The notes beneath the pieces were generated by a model that saw only the letters and a program-made list of their open reading frames with translations, searched no databases and was not told the origin of the DNA. Below are positions 31,501-34,500 of a stretch of DNA of 64,000 nucleotides, one piece after another. Both the position numbers and the translations under genes were made by a program. This stretch comes from Thalia democratica (Eukaryota), in the NCBI GenBank assembly GCA_965202585.1, contig OZ241833.1, positions 22,134,001-22,198,000 on the forward strand, in the 5' to 3' direction. How positions within the stretch are numbered: the stretch's first letter is position 1; every line of letters starts with the position of its first letter.

Positions 31501-34500
31501 TTATAAAAAAAAACTATTTACTAACCTTTAAGAAAAACTACCAGATTGTGTAATGTTTAACTATTTTTGTAAAACCTAAGCACAGTTTTTTTTTTGCATA
31601 TTTTTTTTTTTTACGACTTTAACTCGAGAAGCATTTAAAAGGAATTTATTCAAAAATTTTTATTTTATTTAGTGTTAATGATGTTTCATTAGATTATTAC
31701 GTCATAAACCTCAAACTCCATTTACCATACAAAATGTCTAGCCGAGAACTTTTATGAATAACGTAACATCAATTATTCTCTTTGAAGTGTTGGAAATTTC
31801 ATCACTATCAAATAGTCGTTATATAAAATACTACTACATTACTTTAACAATGTGATTTGTTTTATTTGTTACAAATATCTTTTTATAGTGTATCAAAAAA
31901 AAATTAAAAATAACCTAGTTTTGCAAATCATGTTGAAAATAAACAATAAAGTATAGTCTAAAATAAAAATTTATTGTAAAATTATAGACTTACTTTCACT
32001 TGAGATGTTTCTTATAGTATTTTCATTATACGAATTTTACAAAATATGTACTTCACAGTTTACAAAACAATAAATTAAACAGCTAGCATGCATAATGGCA
32101 AGAGTATATATTTTGTTTTAGTTTATATTACACCTACAGTGATTTAAAAACAAATACAAATGTTATCAGTTGATAATAAAAGGCTTATTGATCAATTAAA
32201 CAAATTTTTGAAAAAAACTGTAATGACAAAGCTAAATTATATTAAATTCATTAAAAAAATCGTTTAAAATATTTAAAATCGACCTTTTGCTTAAATTTGA
32301 CTAAACATAATTGCACTAAAAATTTAATAAAAATAAAAAGTTTTAAATTCTTCATCCTGCTGTCATCTGGCTACAACATTAAAAACACTTGCAAACAACA
32401 TAAACACATATCAAGTTTAAATTCTCTTTACCCCACGATCCTCATAAAACATTTCATACATAAAAATAAACATGCTACATTACAAAAAATAAGCTGATAC
32501 TTTTTGTTTTCAACGCATGCAATAAATAACTCAATCACCAAAGAATAAACAGCCGCTGATGCTGACCGAAGTGTTTTTTACTTTATTTTTTAAAACTTCT
32601 ACCATCTGGGGACGTTGTTGCTGGTAGTCGACAGGTACGGGGGAGAATCCCTCCCCTTCGGAAACTCCGGCGACCCCAGCAGGGGGTTGTGAAATATTTT
32701 GGCCGGGGCGGCAGCGGACGGCTCGCACGAGGAGGAGGGGTTCTGCGGAAGGGGGTAGAAGTTGGGCTCGAAGCCGGGTAAAACCTGAGGGGAACTTATT
32801 GGCTGCTGAAAAGGGTTGTGGGTAAACGGTGGCTGCTCCTGCTGAAACGACTGGGCAGAGGGCAAATGGTGCGTGGGCTGGTACATGTGGTGAAAATCCG
32901 GTTGATGGTTGAACGGGTCGTTGTTCCAGAAGACCATTTCTTGGGGCGAATGCAGGACGTGGAGGTGGGGCATGGAAGGCGGTTGGTGTAAAACGGGGCT
33001 CATCTGGTAATTGTACAGCGGGTTAAAGTCCTCGCGGGGTTGCACGAAAGACAGGGGCCGGAGCCTGGGTCGATTATGTTGCTGCATGTTGTTAGAAAAA
33101 GTTCGGTTCCTCCTGAACACAACGCCGTCGGAGTTGTGGGGACGTTGCGGTTTGCCCCTGTGCTGGTTTATGATCCTGTTTTGGGTATTCACCTCGGACG
33201 CGTGGTCCTTCTGCCCCAAGTCCTGCAATGAGGCGAAAGTCTTCCTCCTCGGCATGTCAAAGTACTTCCTCCTGCCCACGCTGCTATCGTCAGTGAATTT
33301 TCTGTTCTGCTGGTTCTTCTTGCCGTTCTTGAACTGGTACAACGGCTGGAACTTGTTTTTGTTTGCCCGTTGCCTTCTCTCCCTGTTCGCTTCCTGGCTC
33401 TTCAGGTTCTGCTGGTGCCGCTTCTGCTGCTGCTCCCACCTCAACCTGCCCCTCCTGAACGCCACGTCGTTCTCCATCAGCCACGCGATCTTCGCCTCCT
33501 TGTCGGTAATGTGAGGTGGGACCACCACTCCGGGCGACGGCTTGCTGAAGTCGTCCGACCTGACGTACCTCGGCGAGAACTTCTTCTCCCCCTCCTCCTG
33601 ATTGAACTTCACCTTCTTCTTGTTCTCTTTCTGCTTGTCGCTGACGACCTGCTCCAGCGCCTCCATCTTGTCCTTCATCTCCTTCAACTGCCGGTCCTTG
33701 TCCTCGTTGTCCGTCTTCACCGACTGCAGCATGTCGATGAGCGTCGCCATGTTGTCTTTGATGTCCTGGATGCTGGAAATATCTCCTTTGACCTCTTTTT
33801 CTTCTTCGCCTTTCGCGCTCAGGCACTCTGTCTCCCTCACCACCGCCTCGACTATCCGCTTGTGCCTTTCCCGGTTATCCGCGTCACCGTCACGGTCCGC
33901 CGCCTTCAACTTATCCAAGCACATTTTCTCGATCTGCTCCTTGGTGCTCTCGAAGCCTCCCCTGGCTATTTCGAGGCACACCTCCTTCGTCACTCGCTCC
34001 TGCAAATCTTCTTCTAAATTCTCAACGCTGGAAGGCGCTGTTTCGCCGCCGTAGGGCTCCATGACGCCTATTGGCTGCATGCCGACCGCGAAGTTCTTCA
34101 GCACCTTCTGCAGTTGCTGGGGCGTGAGGTCCTTGCGCAGCTTGGCCACCACGCGGCTCATCTGCCGGAACTTCTGCGAGTTCTCGTCGCCGGCGTACAC
34201 CGACTCGAGCTTGACGGGTGGAAGTGTTGAGAGTTGAAGAAAAAAAAAAAGAATTTTTGTGAAGTAATTTTGAAAAAGTGTTTGAAGTTGAATAAGAACG
34301 AAATTGATTAAAATTACGATTTAAGTATTTTTTTTTAAGTTTAAGTACGAAAGAATGCTTATTAAGTAAAAATGAATGTAGTTATATAGTTTTTGAAGAA
34401 GCTAGCTGATTTTTCAAAGAAGTTTTGAACATAAAACAAACATTAATTGTACAACGTGAACTTTACAACATTTAGTTGCATTTTCAATTATACTTTCTCA

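Follow-up and report, generated by a model that had tools for sequence, protein, structure and literature searches.

The window analysed here is a 64-kb stretch of Thalia democratica DNA (contig OZ241833.1, positions 22,134,001 to 22,198,000, forward strand); positions below are counted from its first letter. It is very A+T-rich, with introns of about 22–28% G+C, and carries a large minus-strand gene with G+C-rich exons. The gene encodes a kinesin-3 of the KIF1/unc-104 type. Its domain set is present: motor, FHA and Kinesin_assoc by Pfam in the metatranscriptome protein P0011, DUF3694 and PH as exons of the window. The subject of this report is a 1.6-kb exon at 34209–32599 (minus strand), termed the alpha exon, which very probably is an alternative last exon of this gene and gives it a second tail.

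The kinesin gene and its alpha exon

The motor, neck, FHA and coiled coil 2 (CC2) exons are placed at 53787 down to 35682 by tblastn with P0011, a full-length transcript protein. Both tails follow in one gene and on one strand, the alpha tail proximal and the PH (beta-type) tail distal, at 25903 down to 11661–11470. The beta exon begins at 25903, so the alpha exon sits inside the 8.6-kb intron that is removed in the PH-tail form.

The open frame of the alpha exon, 34209–32602, comprises 536 codons and is closed by a TAG at 32601–32599. The acceptor AG is at 34211–34210, and a pyrimidine tract of about 40 nt lies just 5′ of the exon. The upstream exon (exon 17) ends in ...LLQQKL at 34502 and is followed by a donor GT. 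With LLQQKL and GT on the upstream side, and AG and an open frame on the downstream side, the junction is in phase 0. There is no in-frame stop between the acceptor and the first ATG, which comes 16 codons into the exon. An AATAAA is present at 32587–32582, 12 nt 3′ of the stop. The exon has 56.8% G+C and 80% G+C at third codon positions (GC3), and the flanking intron about 24% G+C. In GC3 it resembles those exons of the gene that are most biased. Among the kinesin exons (35682–52440) GC3 is uneven, 0.38–0.49 at 41902–43976 and 0.69–0.88 elsewhere, with introns of about 24% G+C.

The initial annotation, made from the sequence, had described a G+C-rich frame in intron 17 with an acceptor, a stop codon and a nearby AATAAA, placed directly after QQKL, where downstream PH-tail exons starting EYEEKL would otherwise follow. 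These features are confirmed, and all the tail protein blocks that it quoted are present in the translation.

The open frame is more than chance, because the tail protein has database relatives (E values down to 1e-72 outside its near kin) and the codon changes are mostly synonymous. Against an environmental relative in the public run X1, 20 of the 34 changed codons are synonymous; the ratio of synonymous to non-synonymous changes is 13:5 in the helical half and 7:9 in the disordered half.

Contigs of four (X1, X3, X6, X7) of the nine public runs containing the locus were aligned to 31500–37400. X1 and X3 are metatranscriptomes of two marine samples; X6 is an organism-labelled run. Cover is even and DNA-like in X7, and exon-only in X1, X3 and X6. 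The joint 34502 to 34209 (GT..AG on the minus strand, 292 nt skipped), named in the initial annotation as the junction to look for, is seen in contigs of X1, X3 and X6. Contig 13 of X3 spans exon 16, exon 17 and the alpha exon. In these three runs the alpha exon and the shared exons have similar contig depth. In X1 and in X6 there is in addition a contig whose match stops at 34501 and which then has a 30-nt extension identical to 25873–25902 in the PH-tail exon. The exact match identifies the extension as the beta junction, so both forms are made.

A poly(A) end near 32570, as first proposed, is not the main site. Contigs of X6 extend past the AATAAA near 32585 as far as about 32131, and those of X1 as far as about 32013, which puts the main 3′ end about 0.5 kb 3′ of the stop. 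In the same runs cover is absent from 31100–31499 and from the unique parts of 25500–31499. The alpha exon is therefore terminal, with a 3′ untranslated region (UTR) of about 0.5 kb.

Two metatranscriptome proteins contain motor and alpha tail together. P0011 (1210 aa) has the motor, FHA and ...LLLQQKL, followed by LESVYAG... and continuing to ...NNVPRW; its tail is 97% identical to the window tail (phmmer). P0034 (1264 aa) has the same motor-FHA-QQKL-LESVYAG join and a tail 73% identical to that of the window (tblastn). Both have Kinesin, FHA and Kinesin_assoc domains, and P0011 also Microtub_bd (Pfam).

Table 1. Features of the kinesin gene in the window
Feature	Position	Strand	Evidence
Alternative terminal coding exon (alpha tail), 536 codons + TAG	32599..34209	-	Sequence, homology, structure model
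Alpha-form 3′ UTR; RNA contigs reach ~32131 (X6), ~32013 (X1)	32013..32598	-	Contig depth
Alpha-form intron, 292 nt, GT..AG, long pyrimidine tract before acceptor	34210..34501	-	RNA joint in X1, X3, X6
Last exon common to both isoforms (exon 17), donor GT 34501-34500	34502..34573	-	RNA joints 34573/35685, 34502/34209
Shared exon 16, FHA-coiled coil 2 linker	35685..35818	-	RNA joints 34573/35685, 35818/36519; tblastn of P0011
Motor-domain exons	42834..53787	-	tblastn of P0011, 95-98% identity exon by exon
First PH-tail (beta-type) exon, EYEEKL..., tttcag acceptor; 3′ end near 25811 by sequence only	25811..25903	-	Contig loose end, sequence
DUF3694 (PF12473) exons of PH-type tail, matches 15671-15916 and 16800-16964	15671..16964	-	Domain search
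PH-domain exon of PH-type tail	11470..11661	-	Sequence; single copy in genome

The two DUF3694 matches correspond to 22149671–22149916 and 22150800–22150964 on contig C9. High-copy repeats are present in intron 17 at 28900–29100 and 30500–30900; in X9, a DNA-like run, their summed contig depth reaches about 1.5 million, and they are present in RNA runs too. The open reading frames at 30723–30973 fall within this repeat stretch. Downstream of the kinesin gene lies a protein kinase gene (3219–6613, minus strand) with a DFG motif and a lysine-rich N-terminal exon.

Homology, structure and affinity of the alpha tail

The window tail is a homologue of the vertebrate KIF1B-alpha and KIF1C tails. A phmmer search with the tail against 1.8 billion protein representatives gives 31 matches. 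These include a Gekko protein of KIF1B-alpha type ending in ...RETTV (P0016, E 6e-17), which contains the KIF1B-alpha-type sequence given in the initial annotation, the KIF1C of Pristis (E 1e-12), the KIF1C of Leucoraja and Equus, and the amphioxus model C3ZLN3, a motor plus tail of 1038 aa (E 4e-8; BLASTP E 2e-14). The BLASTP alignment to Pristis KIF1C (E 6e-22) is collinear across 280 residues, and the proposed likeness to KIF1B-alpha and KIF1C tails is thus significant in both searches. A profile built from 20 tails matches 239 proteins; the named ones among the best 120 are all chordate KIF1C, KIF1B or tunicate, and the KIF1B isoforms among these 120 are of about 1140–1185 aa.

Conserved blocks stand in identical order across the aligned tails. 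The helix L-M-x-x-D-x-x-F-R-R-G-R-x-x-W, which follows the coiled coil, is invariant in 24 of 24 aligned tails, that of the window included. Identity of the window tail is 21–41% to all aligned tails save its near relative P0034 (79%). The vertebrate C-terminal PPRMRRQxSAP motif and the ...ETTV end of KIF1B-alpha are absent from the window tail; the vertebrate C-terminal motifs are present in P0016, P0022 and P0023. Pfam returns TerB_C and Dak2 only, both sub-threshold and rejected as noise. Neither the amphioxus tail nor that of the window has a usable match in the ESM Atlas.

In the tail, residues 1–290 are helical and comprise a putative domain of the Hook3-binding type, the AFRRGRLRW helix and, between them, a long coiled coil. 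The remaining part, residues 291–536, is disordered, with 13.8% P, 9.8% Q, 8.9% N and 8.9% S, and is also H-rich. In the AlphaFold model the helices are confident as far as residue 284, and disorder sets in at residue 295; the predicted local distance difference test score (pLDDT) is below 50 at nearly all residues 295–533. The best structural match of the model is 9ko8_A, the crystal structure of KIF1C(714-809) with Hook3 (target template modelling score 0.79, probability 0.99). A search with the family profile also reaches the KIF1C chain of this entry (E 4e-44). In human KIF1C, 14 residues (794–807) are required for Hook3 binding (PMC6719453). This 14-mer reads DAWRAVARDVWDTV in a 1103-aa ape KIF1C; ascidian and amphioxus tails retain W..VARDV.DT in the region.

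Among named sequences, the tails of Ciona intestinalis and Styela clava are nearest to that of the window. A motif starting SPRY(I/V), just before the AFRRGRLRW helix, is present in all tunicate-type tails, window included, and absent from vertebrate and amphioxus tails. The motif is also found in the marine metatranscriptome fragments P0014, P0018, P0019, P0020 and P0025, and on the metagenome contigs L003:528-3571 and L004:1696-2225; the tail on L003 has at least three exons. A maximum-likelihood tree of 30 tails places the window with Ciona-type sequences, apart from Styela-type sequences (support 100/99); unnamed rows of the tree were labelled tunicate by the analyst. The same tree unites the vertebrate tails, KIF1C and KIF1B-alpha alike, in a single clade (99/99) that excludes those of amphioxus and tunicates. 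The affinity of the tail and its occurrence in marine metatranscriptomes would suit a pelagic tunicate, perhaps a thaliacean.

The tail, the FHA stalk (query residues 396–674) and the KIF1-type PH exon occur in one copy each in the 802-Mb assembly, all at this locus; other kinesin loci of the genome match the motor only. A single KIF1 gene, as had been proposed, is thereby supported. A second DUF3694 match on contig C10 and a KIF1B-domain match on contig C2 are found, neither with a KIF1-type stalk or PH match. Contig C2 also carries, at 41761545–41762654, a kinesin motor match of 41% identity in an uninterrupted frame of 1478 aa, in contrast to the many introns of the KIF1 gene; it may be an intronless kinesin gene.

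Layout of the tail exon in other chordates

In Ciona intestinalis the homologous tail exon (L001:9998-12319, AP043570.1) is annotated as LOC113474165 (772 aa), a single exon on the same strand, nested in a KIF1 gene with a DUF3694 and PH product. The exon upstream of it ends in ...EKQRL, and a TTTTAG acceptor stands one codon before the annotated ATG. RefSeq lists this gene, and LOC120345389 of Styela clava (P0017), as stand-alone genes for an uncharacterized protein. Both are most likely the mis-split last exon of a KIF1 gene. In Ciona savignyi the Ensembl model H2YU72 joins motor to tail, reading ...EKQRLELEARDH... across the join. The expectation that gene predictors would split off the alpha exon thus holds for RefSeq in Ciona intestinalis and Styela clava, but not for H2YU72 and amphioxus C3ZLN3, which are joined to the motor.

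In two genomes with tunicate-type tails (L005, L006) the tail is one exon preceded by an in-phase pyrimidine tract and AG acceptor. It follows the Kinesin_assoc exons in L006 and stands 2 kb before the KIF1B-domain exon in L005. In medaka KIF1C an exon ends exactly after ...EQHRL, and the tail matches in several separate blocks. The amphioxus model C3ZLN3 (P0024) reads LLEQQRL KFFLFFFFLVS LEMEKDD at residues ~590–600. The middle segment resembles a translated pyrimidine tract, so the acceptor chosen in this model is probably about 33 nt too early.

Interpretation, rival explanations and significance

With high confidence, 34209–32599 is read as an alternative last exon of the sole KIF1/unc-104-type kinesin-3 gene of this tunicate, a gene with two tails. 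On the alpha route, exon 17 is joined across the 292-nt intron to the 1.6-kb exon, with the stop at 32601–32599 and the transcript end about 0.5 kb further on. This yields a motor, about 1210 aa long, whose tail is the homologue of those of KIF1B-alpha and KIF1C. On the beta route, the alpha exon is skipped and exon 17 spliced 8.6 kb downstream to the DUF3694 and PH exons. The DUF3694 and PH tail is the vesicle-binding tail of unc-104, KIF1A and KIF1B-beta. The choice would be set by the near acceptor, with its poly(A) site, competing against the distant one. Homology suggests that the alpha tail may carry non-vesicle cargo through a putative adaptor domain of the Hook type, together with its coiled coil and disordered region.

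Several points weigh against this reading. All RNA evidence consists of assembled contigs (Logan) and not raw reads, and such contigs give no information on poly(A) tails, on where transcripts start or on the ratio of the isoforms. The beta exon itself has no cover when the runs are aligned to 25500–31499, although gaps in cover prove nothing; the evidence for the beta junction is consequently the exactly matching 30-nt loose end and nothing else. Within its family the window tail diverges most, and it has lost the SCEESW and CGLPSSG blocks. Its Hook3 14-mer is degenerate, with both Trp gone. A phmmer search of the window tail alone against chains of the Protein Data Bank gives no true match and does not reach the KIF1C crystal chain, and the structural match to 9ko8 is not independent, because the alignment behind the model included vertebrate tails.

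The alpha exon could be a separate nested gene with its own promoter in intron 17 and a stand-alone protein, as the RefSeq listing of the Ciona intestinalis and Styela clava homologues as independent uncharacterized proteins would have it. Several database proteins are likewise tail-only (P0001, P0002), and an extra internal promoter is possible. Such a gene is nevertheless improbable, given that spliced contigs of three runs join exon 17 to the alpha exon, that P0011 and P0034 are full-length transcripts of motor plus tail, and that the frame is open from the acceptor through the 16 codons before its first ATG. An in-phase pyrimidine tract and AG also precede the conserved block in Ciona, L005 and L006, and the Ensembl model of Ciona savignyi joins motor and tail. 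Slightly less probable again is splicing noise or a decaying, functionless relic. Fast evolution of the tail, at 21–41% identity outside P0034, the loss of several blocks conserved elsewhere and a C-terminal half of low complexity would fit a relic; the intact frame of 536 codons, the excess of synonymous changes (20 of 34) against the relative, the P0034 tail with the same ends, the depth on a par with the shared exons in X1, X3 and X6, and core motifs invariant across chordates do not.

That the window is vertebrate and the gene plainly KIF1B is refuted by the tests made here and is the least probable of these explanations. Its architecture is indeed that of KIF1B, with alpha proximal, beta distal and the junction at the place of EQQRL. 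The nearest named tails, however, are those of Ciona and Styela, the SPRY(I/V) motif is lacking in vertebrates and amphioxus, and the tail is one exon as in Ciona and not several blocks as in medaka KIF1C. The genome has a single KIF1-type stalk and PH exon, and the tree puts the window on the tunicate side (100/99). The initial annotation had itself named a vertebrate genome with separate KIF1A, KIF1B and KIF1C genes as an alternative; the grouping of the tail with Ciona and Styela speaks against it.

The two-tailed kinesin gene of the window shares with vertebrate KIF1B the arrangement of one gene and two motors with common motor, FHA and CC2, splitting after EQQRL (QQKL here) into an alpha tail without PH and a beta tail with DUF3694 and PH, the alpha blocks being collinear. 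In vertebrate KIF1B the alpha exons lie upstream of the beta exons. It differs from KIF1B in being the single KIF1 gene of its genome and in having the alpha tail in one 1.6-kb exon. With KIF1C it shares the layout of a small helical domain, here as predicted, the coiled coil, the AFRRGRLRW helix and the long disordered region, together with the exon boundary seen in medaka. KIF1C has the alpha-type tail only, whereas the window gene also has a PH tail; the Hook3 14-mer is not conserved in the window, and the disordered region of the window is Q-, N-, H- and F-rich besides P. Unc-104 and KIF1A share the motor, FHA, DUF3694 and PH, exons for all of which are in the window, but have the PH-type tail only, as described. 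LOC113474165, H2YU72 and C3ZLN3 belong to the same tail family, the latter two joined to a motor; they are predictions that carry no stated interpretation.

Vertebrates and tunicates are sister groups, and the two genome duplications of the vertebrate lineage are not shared by tunicates. Together with the tail tree, this position implies that a single pre-duplication gene had both tails. The tunicate-vertebrate ancestor would already have carried the two tails in one gene; once that gene had been duplicated in vertebrates, KIF1B would have kept both, KIF1A the PH tail and KIF1C the alpha tail. It is likely, though less firmly so than the reading of the exon itself, that the alpha/beta switch is ancestral at least to tunicates and vertebrates, probably to all chordates, and that KIF1A and KIF1C are its split halves. 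The tests run support the earlier proposal of a pro-orthologue with both tails and a switch that predates the vertebrate duplications.

It is already known that KIF1B has alpha and beta tails and that the KIF1C tail resembles that of KIF1B-alpha (e.g. PMC10256740, PMC1266353). The join of motor and tail is already in the public models H2YU72 of Ciona savignyi and C3ZLN3 of amphioxus. A two-tailed ancestor is already the simplest expectation, since KIF1B carries the two tails and its paralogues one apiece. In the open literature, no paper was found that states a pre-vertebrate origin of the alpha tail or a tunicate switch. The finding is a sound and moderately interesting orthologue of a known switch, and not a new kind of system.

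Its meaning lies in the history of the family. The KIF1B-alpha/KIF1C tail and its alternative-last-exon switch would be dated before the two vertebrate genome duplications. The locus would be a clean case of two splice forms of one gene divided among paralogues, the PH tail in KIF1A and the alpha tail in KIF1C. The nested genes listed as uncharacterized by RefSeq in Ciona intestinalis and Styela clava would be reassigned to KIF1, and the Ciona orphan LOC113474165 would become the missing KIF1C-like motor isoform. The tunicate-only SPRY(I/V) motif could be an added cargo site. A simple chordate free of paralogues could be used to study functions of the KIF1C type (coupling to Hook3 and dynein, RNA transport, spastic paraplegia SPG58) and would provide a one-gene chordate model for kinesin-Hook-dynein coupling.

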